Of a DNA stretch of 5,040 nt, positions 191-5,040 are shown piece by piece. This DNA comes from Wallemia ichthyophaga EXF-994. Lineage: Eukaryota > Fungi > Basidiomycota. The stretch's first letter is position 1. Each line of letters starts with the position of its first letter. The notes under the pieces were generated by a model. The model searched no databases. It was given only the letters and a program-made list of their open reading frames with translations, and was not told where the DNA came from. The translations under genes were made by a program, and so were the position numbers. The stretch spans positions 1 to 5,040 of the forward strand of contig NW_008806315.1 in assembly GCF_000400465.1 (NCBI RefSeq). The letters run 5' to 3'.

Positions 191-439
<249 letters not shown>

Positions 440-720
440 ATACCATCAATTTGATACTTCCATGTATCATTTCTAACAATATTTACTATTTAGTATTTAT
501 TGTTAGTAGTCGTCTATACATATTATATATTTTAATTAGAGAGAAAAGAAAATAATTGTTTATAAAAAAATATAAAATTATAGGTATTAGGTTTAAATTT
601 TTAAAAATCTATAGTACTTGTTACATTTTTATACGTTAATTGTTTGGAAAATATAAAAGTTTTGTACTTTAATAGATAATATCTGTTATTTGTATTGTAG
701 TTAAAGAAAAAAGATGATGA

Positions 721-1235
721 AAGGTTTTAACAAATACGGTTTCTACCCTTTGTCTCATTTCTAGTGTAAATCTTAGACAAAATCTGGATTTATGGATGCA
801 GGTTTATGGTAAAGGTGGTGTTTCTGCATGGTTAAATACTATTACTGGTGACCTTTATATTGGTAGAGATTTAAGAAGAGCATTAAGTTATCTATCTGAT
901 TCTTATAAGAAAACTAATGCCAATACTAGAGTAGTCAAAAATATGGAATAAAATTTTAAGTTTTGTGTATTAGAAGAATTTGACAAATAGATAAAATCTC
1001 GAATAAAGACACTTATGGTGAACTTAAAGTTTACAATAGTGCATTGATTATAGACGTCATGCATATCCTGATCTAACTAAATCTGAAAAGATGATGGGTG
1101 ATAAAAATCACTTTTTTGGTAATAAACATACGGATAGGCTATTCTTTCATAACAAATATAAAAACTCCAATAAGACCAGGTGTTGTAGTTGAATGAATTG
1201 ATCTAAAAAATGAGGAAAAGGAGTGCAAGTTAGTC
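721..1235 (+). pseudogene. Degenerate GIY-YIG homing endonuclease gene with NUMOD3-like motif
   Basis: Frame of 781 reads YGKGGVSAWLNTITGDLYIGRDLRRALSYLS (GIY-like GVS at 817-825, YIG at 856-864), stop at 949-951, then NFKFCVLEEF. A second frame gives KMMGDKNHFFGNKHTD (1088-1135, NUMOD3-like) and a third gives IRPGVVVE(TGA)IDLKNEEK (1170-1220, resembling the C-terminal DNA-binding repeats). Several stops and frameshifts; boundaries approximate. Confidence 0.8.
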
Positions 1236-2293
1236 TTTTATTTAGTAATTTCGTTCCTCTCTCATTATTAAATAAAAATTATACAACCAACTCATATAGT
1301 AAATCATTTGATGATAAAGGTTGGTTTTTACTGGTTTAACTGATGGCGAAGGATATTTTACAGCTGATATTAACAAGTCTAATACTACTAAATTAGGATA
1401 GGACTAAGATTTGGTTTACTAATGCATATTCGTGATATTGAATTACTACTTTCTTTTTCTGAATATTTAGGAAATATTGGTTATGTTAGAGCTGATCATA
1501 ATAGAAACCAGGCAGTGTTTAATGTTAGTTCTATTCAAGAACTAGTAATGGTTATTAACCATTTTAACAGATATCCATTAGTTACATCTAAATTTCTAGC
1601 TTTTTATACTTTTAAATTAATTCATAATATTATTATCACTAAGCAGCATCTAAGTGTATCTGGTTTTGTTTTAGTATGTTCTTATATTAACATTTTAAAT
1701 AAACCGTTATATCCAAAAAACTTGGTGAATTAACTAATGCTTTTGGTTGTTTATATGATGTTGTACAACATCATATAAACAACCAAAAGCATTAGTTAAT
1801 TCACCAAGTTTTTTGGATATAACGGTTTATTTAAAATGTTAATATAAGAACATACTAAAACAAAACCAGATACACTTAGATGCTGCTTAGTGATAATAAT
1901 ATTATGAATTAATTTAAAAGTATAAAAAGCTAGAAATTTAGATGTAACTAATGGATATCTGTTAAAATGGTTAATAACCATTACTAGTTCTTGAATAGAA
2001 CTAACATTAAACACTGCCTGGTTTCTATTATGATCAGCTCTAACATAACCAATATTTCCTAAATATTCAGAAAAAGAAAGTAGTAATTCAATATCACGAA
2101 TATGCATTAGTAAACCAAATCTTAGTCCTATCCTAATTTAGTAGTATTAGACTTGTTAATATCAGCTGTAAAATATCCTTCGCCATCAGTTAAACCAGTA
2201 AAAACCAACCTTTATCATCAAATGATTTACTATATGAGTTGGTTGTATAATTTTTATTTAATAATGAGAGAGGAACGAAATTACTAAATAAAA
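1236..2293. repeat. Perfect spacer-less palindrome, 1058 bp (two 529-bp inverted arms, 1236-1764 and 1765-2293)
   Basis: Position i pairs with 3529-i. Blocks 1236-1428 vs 2101-2293 and 1669-1764 vs 1765-1860 were checked by eye with no mismatch; the remaining interior is supported by the identical 103-aa ORFs 1422-1733(+) and 1796-2107(-). Centre ...GATGTTGT|ACAACATC...; first mismatch at 1235(C)/2294(C). Confidence 0.98.
1241..1764 (+). pseudogene. Degenerate LAGLIDADG homing endonuclease, left (inverted) copy, first domain only
   Basis: Joining three frames gives ...DDKGWFL/TGLTDGEGYFTADINKSNTTKLG/IGLRFGLLMHIRDIELL...INHFNRYPLVTSKF...LNKPLYPK/KLGELTNAFG. LAGLIDADG motif TGLTDGEG at 1330-1353. 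Frameshifts near 1330, 1398 and 1715-1720. The ORF-track ORF 1422-1733 is the middle piece. Confidence 0.88.
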
Positions 2294-2372
2294 CTAATAA
2301 CTGAAGAATACTATTGTCTAAAACTACACTCTTATTATAATGTGAACTTATATTATTAAATATATAATAATA
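1765..2372 (-). pseudogene. Degenerate intron-encoded LAGLIDADG homing endonuclease, right copy (probably the native one), truncated at the palindrome centre
   Basis: Mirror of the left copy. On the minus strand the frame stays open across the arm boundary 2294/2293 (SVVLDNSILQLLVLFSNFVPLSLLNK...GWFL) back to the intron S/P9 region, and it is co-oriented with the cob intron. The upstream limit is approximate and no in-frame ATG was seen. Confidence 0.85.
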
Positions 2373-2535
2373 TCGGACTATATCATATTATTGTATTGTA
2401 TAGTCTCTGAAAATGTTTCACATTTAGCTAATTGTACAAATTTTTACGGATTATAACAATATAAAATTGTACCATTAAAAACTTTGTATATATATATCTA
2501 GCTATTGAATATATTTTATAGCTACACACTAAATT
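2350..2535 (-). mobile_element. Group I intron (IB-like) catalytic core in cob, inserted after cob nt 155; 3' end not found in the window
   Basis: Minus strand: P1 = exon UAGCUAU paired with GUAGCUA (2525-2519), with U.G at the splice site; P4 = UAGCUAG (2504-2498) with UUAGCUA (2431-2425); P5 = 2488-2476 with 2446-2435; P6 = AAUGU-GAA-ACAUU; R element UCAGAGACUA (2410-2401); S element AUGAUAUAGUCC (2386-2375); 9-bp P9-like hairpin at 2373-2350. P3 and P8 were not confidently resolved. Confidence 0.9.
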
Positions 2536-2690
2536 ATAGCTAGGATGATACCTGTTACTAATTGTAAACCAAGACAAGTTGCTAATAGTGATCCAAAATT
2601 CCACATGTAACTAATGTTAGCTGGTTGTGGAGAATCAACAACGTAACTATTCACTAAACTTAATAATGGATGTGATTTTAGTAAACGCAT
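2536..2690 (-). CDS. cob: Apocytochrome b, exon 1 (155 nt; partial CDS)
   Basis: Reverse complement from ATG at 2690 reads [51 protein letters not shown] plus AT, clearly the cytochrome b N-terminus. Similarity stops inside the Met codon of the conserved LAMHY, exactly at the group I 5' splice site (exon ends in U). No stops or frameshifts. Confidence 0.96.
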
Positions 2691-3042
2691 AAATTTAATA
2701 AAAAATAGCTAATAGTATATAGATATCTAATTTAATAGATAAATATTATACTATTATTGCTGTAAAAACAACAACTTAAATGACAACGTAAAAAATTGCT
2801 ATTATAAAAATAATAACATATAGAAATTAAAAAAATTACCTAAAAGTAAAAAATAAAAATAATAAATGAAATTCAAAAAAAATAAAATAAATTCGTAATT
2901 AAGCTACCTTTATAATATATATTTTAATATAATATTAGATTATGCTAAGTTTGTTTTAACTTATAAAATTTTATGTTAGGACGATATTGTATATATTGAC
3001 GTTAAAATAAATGTATGGACGAATAATATATAAAATATTAGT

Positions 3043-3069
3043 GATATATTAGATATATTAGATATATTA
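3043..3069. repeat. Tandem repeat, 3 x GATATATTA, in the nad4-cob spacer
   Basis: Three exact 9-bp units at 3043-3051, 3052-3060 and 3061-3069. Confidence 0.85.
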
Positions 3070-3198
3070 TTATATAAGAATAAAAAAGTATTAGTTTTAT
3101 TATAAATAGAAATAATAAATTATTTTTAGAGTTATGTTATTGGATTATATTAGGGAGGGGTATTAAATTTTTATAATAGTGGTTAATTAGTTATTATA

Positions 3199-4659
3199 TT
3201 AGTATAATAGACCTGTAACACTTACGTGTAAGTTATCAAGAATAACATTAGGGTAAATTCCTAGTAAAAGAGTCATAGTAATTAATGGTAATAATACGTG
3301 AAATTCTCTTCTATTAATATCTTTCATATAGCTTAGGTATTTACTATAAGTACCGAAACTCATTCTTGAGAATAACCAGATACTATATGCTGCTCCTAAT
3401 ACAACACTCGAGGCTGCTAATGTACCTACAACCATTGATTTTCCAAAGATACCCATTAATGATAATGATTCTCCTAACCAATTTAGAGATAATGGTACTC
3501 CACAGTTTGCTAGTGTTAATACAAAGAATAAGGCAGATGTAACTGGCATATAAAGAGTAAGTCCCCTGTAGTATCTTAGTACACGAGTATGAAATCTATC
3601 ATATAAAATTCCTCCTACTACCATGAATAATCCAGGGGATACAAATCCATGTGCAATTGATAATAACATATCACCTTCAATACCAATTAGATTATTACTA
3701 AATAATCCTAAAATAACAATACCTTGGTGTTGTACTGAACTCATAGCAATAAAACTTTTACTATCTTGTTGTCTCATACATGAGAATGATGCATAAATAA
3801 CTGTAATTAAAGCTAACATTTGAATCATAGGTTGGTAATAACTTGTTGCTTCTGGCATTAAATCAATTAATACTCTTACATAACCATAAGTTGCAAGTTT
3901 TAGAATTAATCCGGCAAGAATAATACTTCCTGCAACAGGTGCTTCACCGTGAGCTCTAGGTAACCAAATATGTCCAAATGGGATTAAAGGTGTTTTAATA
4001 TATAAACCAATAAATACACCTAACCATAGAATATATTGACTATCTAAATTAATTGAATGTAATCTTAAGTATGAAAAATCAGTTGTTCCAAAATTATTAT
4101 TAATAGTTAAAATTGATAATAACATAAATAGTGATCCTCCTAATGTGTATAAGAATAATAAGAATGATGCTCTAATTCTGTTATTACCTCCCCAGATTCC
4201 TACAATAAGGAATAATGGGATAAGTACTGATTCGAAGAAAACATAGAATAAAATTAGATCACTAACTGTGAAAACAGCAATTAATAAAGATTCTAAAATT
4301 AGTAATAAAATTAGGTAATATTTAGCTTTAAATTTAATATTAGTCCATGATGCTAAAATAGAGATAGGCATAGTAAATGTAGTTAATAATACAAAATAAA
4401 GACTTAAACCGTCAATACCAAAATGAAAACTACAGAAACTAGTATCAAAAATTTGAGAAACAAATTGATAACCTACATGACTATTATCAAATTGTACAAA
4501 TAAGTATAATGATAATACAAATGTGATTACTGTTCCTACTAATGCTAGAACAAAAGGATTAGTACTAAATACATTAGATTTGTTATTAGTTCCACTTTCA
4601 TTATTAACTGAAATAAAAAAACATGTAACTAAAGGAATTAAAATTAGACTTAAAATCAT
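3199..4659 (-). CDS. nad4: NADH dehydrogenase subunit 4, 486 aa, intronless
   Basis: Full ORF with ND4/NuoM motifs: FGIDGLSLYFVLLTT, FYVFFESVLIP, KTP..HIWLPRAH.EAP, LAGLILKLATYG, AHGFVSPGLF, YDRFHTR, GESL. ATG at 4659, TAA at 3201-3199. Confidence 0.98.
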   Translation of the reverse strand: MILSLILIPLVTCFFISVNNESGTNNKSNVFSTNPFVLALVGTVITFVLSLYLFVQFDNSHVGYQFVSQIFDTSFCSFHFGIDGLSLYFVLLTTFTMPISILASWTNIKFKAKYYLILLLILESLLIAVFTVSDLILFYVFFESVLIPLFLIVGIWGGNNRIRASFLLFLYTLGGSLFMLLSILTINNNFGTTDFSYLRLHSINLDSQYILWLGVFIGLYIKTPLIPFGHIWLPRAHGEAPVAGSIILAGLILKLATYGYVRVLIDLMPEATSYYQPMIQMLALITVIYASFSCMRQQDSKSFIAMSSVQHQGIVILGLFSNNLIGIEGDMLLSIAHGFVSPGLFMVVGGILYDRFHTRVLRYYRGLTLYMPVTSALFFVLTLANCGVPLSLNWLGESLSLMGIFGKSMVVGTLAASSVVLGAAYSIWLFSRMSFGTYSKYLSYMKDINRREFHVLLPLITMTLLLGIYPNVILDNLHVSVTGLLY

Positions 4660-4830
4660 ATTTATATTTATTATAAAAATAATTGCGAATTTCCATTGAA
4701 TATCTTATTAATAAAAGATAATCATTTAACTTATTACCTATAATTATAGTATTTTTTAGATTTTTATATAATTGTTTTATATTTATTTATTATATATTAC
4801 TGTTTTATTAAAGGAAATAATTAAATTTAA

Positions 4831-4914
4831 GGAATAGTCTCCATCGGTAAGGTAAAACAGTTGCTATCTGTTTAGATTTTTTAATCTTGGTAGGTTCGAA
4901 TCCTGCCTATTCCG
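4831..4914 (+). tRNA. trnS(gcu): tRNA-Ser (anticodon GCU) with long variable arm
   Basis: Acceptor stem GGAATAG (4831-4837) with CTATTCC (4907-4913), discriminator G. Anticodon stem AACAG/CTGTT with loop TT-GCT-AT (GCT at 4863-4865). Variable arm AGATT-TTTT-AATCT. T arm GTAGG-TTCGAAT-CCTGC. Confidence 0.96.
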
Positions 4915-5040
4915 TGTAAATATAAATACATACCCACAATATTAAATAAATAAATAAATACCAAATAATAATTATACTTAACATAACTATTATTTCATGT
5001 ACAAAAATTTTAATCAGTTTTATTAATACCATAATAAGCA

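Follow-up and report, generated by a model that had tools for sequence, protein, structure and literature searches.

The 5040-bp stretch of DNA analysed here (below referred to as the window) is AT-rich mitochondrial DNA (mtDNA) from the halophilic basidiomycete Wallemia ichthyophaga, with a GC content of 13-43% throughout, and it carries a perfect palindrome with a total length of 1058 bp. This raises the question of how such a palindrome came to be there, and whether it is an element of the mtDNA, a sporadic rearrangement, or an artefact. The palindrome consists of two arms (1236-1764 and 1765-2293) of 529 nt each, which are 100% complementary and have a spacer of 0 nt. Two perfect 529-bp arms without a spacer had been described in an initial annotation, and they were reproduced by a repeat search as well as by a direct reverse-complement test. 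The sequence at the symmetry centre is GTTGTACAAC, and the central TGTACA (BsrGI) site named in that annotation was located at 1762-1767. Symmetry ends sharply at 1235/2294, with 1225-1235 not being the reverse complement of 2294-2304. When folded as single-stranded DNA, the palindrome forms one hairpin of 1058 nt (-595 kcal/mol). The runner-up among the inverted repeats of the window has 40 nt at 70%. Because the longest spacer-less palindromes in shuffled versions of the window (n=200) had arms of only 5-11 nt, an origin of the palindrome by chance is excluded. The features of the window are as follows.

218-439, + strand: intact atp9 (ATP synthase subunit c; PF00137, E=1.1e-15)
631-1238, + strand: degenerate free-standing GIY-YIG homing-endonuclease gene downstream of atp9, cut at 1238 by the left junction
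1172-1215, no strand: patch of five private, derived variants (4 substitutions, one deletion of 1 nt) immediately 5' of the left junction
1236-1238, no strand: left novel junction, with TTT common to donor and acceptor
1236-1764, + strand: left arm, extra inverted copy of cob intron 1 / LAGLIDADG pseudogene, with the ORF sense on the + strand
1752-1777, no strand: natural perfect 26-bp palindrome (TATATGATGTTGTACAACATCATATA) at the symmetry centre
1765-2293, - strand: right arm, native sequence of cob intron 1 (5' part of the LAGLIDADG pseudogene)
2246-2299, no strand: imperfect local inverted repeat (20-nt arms, 85%, 14-nt spacer), which contains the acceptor of the left junction
2294-2535, - strand: cob intron 1, 5' end, which separates exon 1 from the LAGLIDADG pseudogene
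2536-2690, - strand: cob exon 1 (MRLLKSHP...GIILA plus 2 nt; PF00033, E=2.1e-07)
3199-4659, - strand: nad4, full length, with the private change A330D (codon 3670-3672; PF00361, E=1e-69)
4831-4914, + strand: trnS, tRNA-Ser (gct), predicted by ARAGORN

Each arm contains an ORF of 103 aa which matches LAGLIDADG_1 (PF00961, E=7.8e-13). The reading frame is interrupted by stops and frameshifts in the window, and the same breakage (into pieces of 103 aa and 71 aa) is found in all normal copies of the locus, so that the gene is a pseudogene, as the initial annotation had proposed for this homing endonuclease. No ORF of at least 20 aa extends across the centre, and a search for a group I intron core with Rfam (Intron_gpI) gave no match at the gathering score. 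Up to GIILA(M), the first exon of cob encodes the same N-terminus as two cytochrome b proteins of W. mellicola (P0149 and P0159), and the boundary of cob intron 1 was deduced from the intron-less cob gene of W. mellicola. On the other side of the palindrome, window 631-988 aligns at 72% with a region of contig L015 from a related Wallemia, which holds an intact GIY-YIG ORF of 247 aa.

The window was compared with 14 Logan contigs (L001-L014) and with contigs from three W. ichthyophaga isolates at NCBI (L044, L045, and L048; accessions SPOM01000062.1, SPNX01000067.1, and SPNZ01000083.1). It shows 99.4-100% sequence identity to these contigs, the SPNX haplotype being the closest; exact look-ups of its proteins and cluster membership assign it to the genus Wallemia. 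All 17 independent contigs which cover the centre run straight through it into the rest of cob intron 1 and none of them folds back; the comparison with other strains, which had been suggested in the initial annotation, thus found the palindrome in 0 of 17 cases. The normal contigs proceed from nad4 to cob exon 1, to intron 1 with the dead LAGLIDADG gene, and to cob exon 2 onward. Window 1752-5040 is collinear with seven of them (L001, L005, L009, L011, L044, L045, L048) at 99.4-99.7%. The right arm runs on into its normal flank, and the left arm matches the normal contigs solely as the reverse complement of their single copy. At the left boundary, which is covered by 12 contigs from two haplotype groups, all 12 match the atp9 region up to about position 1238 and then diverge toward trnL and trnR. 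In the orientation of the window, the normal order is rest of cob - 26-bp palindrome - 1765-2293 - cob exon 1 - nad4 - trnS - 101 bp - atp9 - GIY-YIG remnant (up to 1238) - trnL/trnR.

The sequences on either side of the palindrome had been regarded as unrelated in the initial annotation. This does not hold for either flank: the right one (2294 onward) is the native continuation of the arm, and the left one (1-1238) is native mtDNA, which is normally found 4.1 kb further along the same strand. Compared with the normal arrangement, just two junctions of the window are new, the centre and the left junction. The related Wallemia with the intact 247-aa GIY-YIG ORF is collinear with the window up to 1238 and past this point with the normal sequence and not with the arm, which indicates that the break at 1238 is derived. 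Position 5040 is followed in the normal genome by 101 bp and then by position 1 (four Logan and three NCBI contigs). The fact that the ends of the window are only 101 bp apart in the normal genome would imply a closed or tandem unit of 5141 bp. We do not consider this closure to be proof of a circle; it shows only that 4.1 kb separate the two junction sites and that a unit of 5141 bp has about the length of the window, and a long tandem or a duplicated source would look alike.

Exact searches with a 40-mer that spans the centre and with a 31-mer that spans the left junction gave no hit in IMG/VR, JGI metagenomes, and GTDB genomes. With the whole window as the query of a megablast, no match was found in collections of phages and plasmids. 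Neither the 38-aa ORF that spans the left junction nor the window's own nad4 protein was on record in a protein look-up.

The symmetry centre coincides exactly with a pre-existing palindrome of 26 bp (TATATGATGTTGTACAACATCATATA) inside the LAGLIDADG pseudogene of cob intron 1. This palindrome occurs once, at the homologous place, in 14 of 14 Logan contigs and 3 of 3 NCBI contigs. More than 30 kb of normal W. ichthyophaga mtDNA were compared, in which it exceeds all other perfect palindromes without a spacer in length. Folding of its single strand gives a hairpin of 11 bp (-7.6 kcal/mol, z=-4.55). The normal continuation of the 26-bp core is TCTTAGGTAAAG...; in the window, the sole change at the centre is that the distal side has been replaced by the reverse complement of the proximal side. 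A centre on the longest natural palindrome is as predicted by a switch guided by that repeat. Two other explanations of the centre were rejected: the core is not a dispersed palindromic element, as it occurs once per genome segment, and a fold-back at a random fragment end, of the type known from nanopore and PacBio sequencing, would shift the centre off the natural palindrome. At K=21-27, all k-mers of the centre are already present in the normal genome, and novel ones are encountered only from K=29.

At the left junction, comparison with six normal contigs and with the flank of the native arm shows that the donor ...GTTAGTCTTT, which normally continues into CTATTCACATATTAGG..., has been joined to the acceptor TTTTATTTAG.... 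Only TTT is common to both sides, and the exact breakpoint may thus be anywhere within 1236-1238. The junction ties a point 4083-4086 bp downstream of the outer end of the arm back to that end, in inverted orientation. Together with a patch of variants next to it, the junction forms an unbroken run of novel 21-mers (1152-1255, about 84 consecutive ones) and could therefore not have been created by shared k-mers alone. A microhomology of 3 nt in AT-rich DNA is no more than is expected by chance. The acceptor is located within a local inverted repeat (2246-2299), such repeats being common (31 in 5.2 kb), and its position there is weakly suggestive. Folding of 1200-1270 gave no significant hairpin at the donor site.

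The patch comprises private variants at positions 1172, 1179, 1196, 1205, and 1215, all of them at most 66 nt from the left junction, and there are zero window-private variants in the preceding stretch of about 950 nt (218-1171). All 12 normal contigs, from both haplotype groups, carry the other allele at the five positions. Since the outgroup shares the normal allele at each of the four substitutions (4/4), these are derived. A paralogous donor of the patch was rejected, as a short-word BLAST of 1100-1240 against all loci matched the normal locus alone; the second natural haplotype (L046, L047) also has the normal alleles there, and an ancestral origin is ruled out by the outgroup alignment. 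Also private to the window are A330D in nad4 and a 7-bp deletion near position 5000. In the alignment column of nad4 residue 330, A is found in 117 of 120 homologues and G in the other 3, with D in the window; A is also found in 13 of 13 cluster members with the motif and in every other contig of W. ichthyophaga.

The two new junctions both have an inverted orientation, one being at an inverted repeat and the other at a microhomology. This agrees with the pattern of template-switch rearrangements. With a probability of roughly 0.5, we consider the palindrome to be a sporadic product of two strand switches in W. ichthyophaga mtDNA, without a function of its own. In the scheme which we infer (this concerns the order of events, whether they took place in the cell, and which physical form the molecule has), a strand synthesised through atp9 and the GIY-YIG remnant would leave its template at 1238 and would re-prime on the opposite strand 4.1 kb behind, at 2293, via the 3-nt microhomology. 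It would then copy 529 nt backwards up to the natural 26-bp palindrome, where a second strand switch would occur, either by snap-back or by return to the original template, and synthesis would then proceed through the right arm, cob exon 1, and nad4. The palindrome would correspond to the stretch copied between the two switches. The predicted product is the 5141-bp unit atp9 - remnant - A' - A - cob exon 1 - nad4 - trnS. This may exist as a subgenomic circle or tandem array, and would then be a petite-like defective mtDNA, or as a duplication of the DUP-TRP/INV-DUP type in the main genome, and both forms should be interconvertible by recombination between direct repeats.

We favour this origin in the cell because the centre is fixed by a natural palindrome, because the microhomology junction is beyond the reach of shared k-mers, and because a derived patch is found beside that junction, as error-prone template switching would leave. 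Also in its favour are the closure of the unit on itself and the damaging private changes (A330D and the 7-bp deletion), which fit a redundant or defective copy under relaxed selection. The initial annotation had proposed, as one of two alternatives, a very recent fold-back at a break inside the LAGLIDADG ORF. The geometry agrees with this, the centre being a pre-existing palindrome, and the rest of cob is indeed cut off in this molecule. A simple fold-back, however, is insufficient: there is a second inverted junction (1236-1238), which ends the arms after 529 bp and imports sequence from 4.1 kb away. A more far-reaching reading, which seems rather unlikely to us, is that of a self-maintaining 5.1-kb subgenomic replicon with atp9, nad4, trnS, and the 1-kb palindrome, which would be amplified over the wild type and would accumulate its own mutations (A330D in nad4 and the 7-bp deletion). 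It would represent a petite-like selfish mtDNA, with the palindrome perhaps serving as a site of replication or resolution. The host of such a replicon would be a halophilic basidiomycete that presumably depends on respiration.

It is a serious possibility, at somewhat less than even odds, that the structure was never present in the fungus and is an assembly error or an in vitro chimera; the initial annotation had already warned of a chimeric artefact. Wrong joins in the assembly graph are one route to this: at small k, the 26-bp palindrome would act as a repeat that is its own reverse complement, and the left junction would come from a read that is chimeric or rich in errors. Along the other route, a polymerase would make the double-switch chimera in vitro (during MDA/RCA, end repair, or PCR), and this would then be assembled. 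Perfect arms with zero spacer are the result to be expected from walking one graph node twice, and the centre has no novel k-mers at K<=27. On the other hand, unitig-type de Bruijn assemblers cannot, to our knowledge, combine a segment of 529 bp with its reverse complement in the same contig, which counts against an artefact. The assembly parameters are in its favour: the W. ichthyophaga reference genome was assembled by SOAPdenovo with K=21 (PMC3849046), and the 21 population genomes of other strains by IDBA-Hybrid with a seed k-mer of 20 and a maximum k of 120 (PMC6738226). So is the fact that the structure occurs in 0 of 17 other contigs over the centre and in 0 of 12 over the left junction. 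Of the chimeras generated by MDA, over 85% are inverted, have an intervening deletion, and are primed on 2-21 nt of complementarity (PMC1855051). The window resembles this dominant type in its inverted joins to nearby sites, where the complementarity is 3 nt for the left junction, with a jump of 4.1 kb, and 26 nt for the centre, with a jump of 0 bp. It is also in line with an artefact that inverted repeats and palindromes give rise to chimeric reads during library preparation (PMC10908179) and that nanopore reads of yeast mtDNA are enriched in inverted-duplication artefacts (PMC9054137). The mutation patch could stem from an error-rich chimeric read. Against an artefact, the accurate phi29 polymerase of MDA is not expected to leave a patch of five variants. 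With a homology of 3 nt and a run of about 84 novel 21-mers, the left junction cannot come from shared k-mers and would need support from a physical molecule or from reads, and a random fragment-end fold-back would not be centred exactly on the natural palindrome. A contig which passes through both junctions implies that neither of them was a minor branch, and the private changes A330D and the 7-bp deletion point to a separate molecule and not to an assembly path that strayed through normal reads.

Two further readings place the structure in the fungus. A recent NUMT, in which mtDNA fragments were captured and joined end-to-end in the nucleus with nad4 being free to decay, would account for a junction homology of 0-3 nt and for damaging changes (A330D, 7-bp deletion) in a copy without the need to function. 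We nevertheless consider it improbable: the window contains no nuclear sequence and has an mtDNA-typical GC content of 13-43%, its identity to mtDNA is 99.4-100%, its ends close on each other in mtDNA coordinates, and a centre on the natural palindrome points to a repeat-guided switch and not to the joining of independent fragments. Even less probable, in our opinion, is a maintained mtDNA element. Candidates would be an origin of replication, a hotspot of recombination, a hairpin telomere or the junction of its replicated dimer, and a large inverted repeat; the initial annotation had offered such an element as its other alternative, under the terms of a replication, recombination, or terminal structure. 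Extrusion of a cruciform from a palindrome of this length and perfection would be possible, as would a hairpin end that was read through, and large inverted repeats or hairpin termini are known from the mtDNA of some fungi. However, the proposal is contradicted by the single copy in the three NCBI isolates and the 14 further same-species contigs (absence from 17/17). The flanks are asymmetric internal genes, so that this is not a terminus, and the structure truncates and destroys the essential cob gene. Its arms are made of a dead endonuclease gene, both junctions are in dead endonuclease genes, and the left one breaks a second pseudogene in a manner that is derived when compared to the outgroup.

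If the two-switch origin applies, the window belongs among known types of rearrangement. Palindromic and 'mixed' rho- mitochondrial genomes of Saccharomyces cerevisiae were reportedly described by Heyting (1979) and by Sor and Fukuhara (1983). The window is similar to such petites in the small segment that is retained (here 4.6 of at least 33.5 kb); a concatemeric or circular form is to be expected here too, and the unit alone would be non-functional for respiration. 'Mixed' petite mtDNAs of yeast have two inverted breakpoints (Nunn & Goyal 2022, PMC9054137), and the similarity extends to a partial inverted duplication bounded by two distinct inverted breakpoints; we consider them to be the nearest documented mitochondrial analogue. 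They differ in that the host is here an obligately halophilic basidiomycete and not a petite-positive yeast, and that one of the breakpoints of the window is a perfect spacer-less palindrome.

Fold-back inverted duplications are alike in having identical arms and a centre on a pre-existing short inverted repeat. Palindromic gene amplification in yeast is one such case; classical fold-backs keep the loop of the short repeat as a spacer and have arms which reach to the next break or telomere. Here, in contrast, the natural repeat has no spacer and the second switch limits the arms to 529 bp. A further example, with priming at short inverted repeats, is reportedly that of PMC3907307. Rearrangements of the DUP-TRP/INV-DUP and MMBIR/FoSTeS types share with the window the two inverted junctions, one at an inverted repeat and one at a microhomology (which, with 3 nt, is weak here), the cluster of point mutations by the microhomology junction, and the predicted structure A - segment - A' - A - segment. 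They differ in having been described for nuclear genomes, with inverted repeats that span kilobases. For a rearrangement of this type, the arm would be predicted at 3x and the intervening segment at 2x the copy number of the rest of the genome. These template-switch rearrangements are said to have been described by Carvalho et al. in 2011 and 2013. Chimeras from MDA and library preparation are similar with respect to the inverted join to a nearby site on the opposite strand, the few nt of complementarity, and the preference for natural inverted repeats and palindromes (PMC1855051, PMC10908179). For the window, two of them would be needed on one assembled molecule, 529 bp apart. Such chimeras are usually individually rare and are not known to carry a patch of substitutions.

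Large inverted repeats (LIRs) occur in the mtDNA of Malassezia and Candida, and hairpin telomeres in that of Pichia/Williopsis. The window is like these in being an inverted duplication in mtDNA with a hairpin-like palindromic reading. They are, however, conserved within a species, have a single-copy spacer or represent the end of a molecule, and leave essential genes intact, none of which is true here: symmetry stops at 1235/2294 with both flanks being internal genes in normal orientation, which does not agree with a hairpin telomere or terminal inverted repeat, and a conserved LIR is at odds with the single copy in three NCBI isolates and 14 Logan contigs and with the missing spacer. The structure is either a one-off inverted-duplication product of an already known type or an artefact which mimics one.

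If it is real, the window provides a base-resolved case of a long perfect palindrome arising in mtDNA and a record of error-prone template switching in a fungal mitochondrion, in which the longest natural palindrome, a microhomology, and a mutation patch are combined. We know of no earlier rearranged mtDNA in Wallemia, and literature searches yielded no publication whose subject is a mitogenome of this genus. In the case of an artefact, the window serves as a warning that a natural palindrome of 26 bp is invisible to de Bruijn graphs at K<=27 and that such palindromes can seed false palindromes on the kilobase scale in organelle contigs. Either way, nothing is implied with respect to a conserved replication or telomere structure, and the general importance is modest.

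Elsewhere in the window, the 73-aa atp9 protein is also found, in identical form, on other Wallemia contigs. The lengths of the poly-A runs at 2835 and 2882 differ from those in most other contigs.

Codon 330 of nad4 (window 3670-3672, minus strand) carries an Ala330Asp substitution that is private to the window. This residue is alanine in every other W. ichthyophaga contig, and the corresponding alignment column holds alanine in 117 of 120 homologues and glycine in 3. We attribute the substitution either to an error or to a damaging mutation carried by a copy that is redundant or defective. The window also differs from all other W. ichthyophaga contigs by a 7-bp deletion at ~5000 in the trnS-atp9 spacer, where it reads CATGTACAAAA and the other contigs read CATGTATACTTGACAAAA.

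All 486 codons of nad4 (window 3199-4659) are open under the bacterial code, and the gene is therefore devoid of TGA codons. In-frame TGA is present in the endonuclease remnants. Core genes seem to avoid TGA as a tryptophan codon.

One of these remnants and its counterpart in a related Wallemia are as follows:

window 631-1238: free-standing GIY-YIG homing endonuclease gene, 3' of atp9, decayed in W. ichthyophaga
L015:11065-11808: GIY-YIG counterpart, an intact ORF of 247 aa, in a related Wallemia from metagenomes

Natural polymorphism among strains was encountered at two places. The GIY-YIG remnant has a second haplotype, defined by a cluster of four changes at window 862-866. The other is a 7-bp indel within the arm sequence of the palindrome (window 1253-1259 and 2270-2278), for which both arms of the window carry the long allele.

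The ~270-bp segment directly 3' of atp9 (window 438-705) has a second copy with 78% sequence identity (L021:1228-1508), which is located ~1 kb farther downstream in the normal, unrearranged mitochondrial genome. Several Logan contigs show breaks near window 660, within this repeat.

All three NCBI contigs of W. ichthyophaga mtDNA (L044, L045, and L048; 33.5-36.5 kb) share their terminal base, which lies inside atp9 (contig position 1 corresponds to window 333). This common end reflects either complete circles which were cut at a deterministic point or a branch in the assembly graph. The presence of a cox2 intron with a LAGLIDADG_2 ORF varies by strain (L034:8898-9982 vs. L044). In two other NCBI contigs, 33 bp (positions 1-33 of L037 and L038) lie between the contig end and cox2 exon 2, on the upstream side of the exon, and both contig ends coincide with this polymorphic intron site.

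Mitochondrial DNA from W. ichthyophaga, supposedly a rare halophile, was found in dozens of Logan runs with adjacent accessions, SRR25393908-SRR25400357 (loci L001, L004-L005, L007-L010, L012, L014, L018, L023-L029, L031-L034, L036, L039-L043, and L046). These neighbouring accessions possibly represent one sequencing project. It was also found in several unrelated Logan runs.
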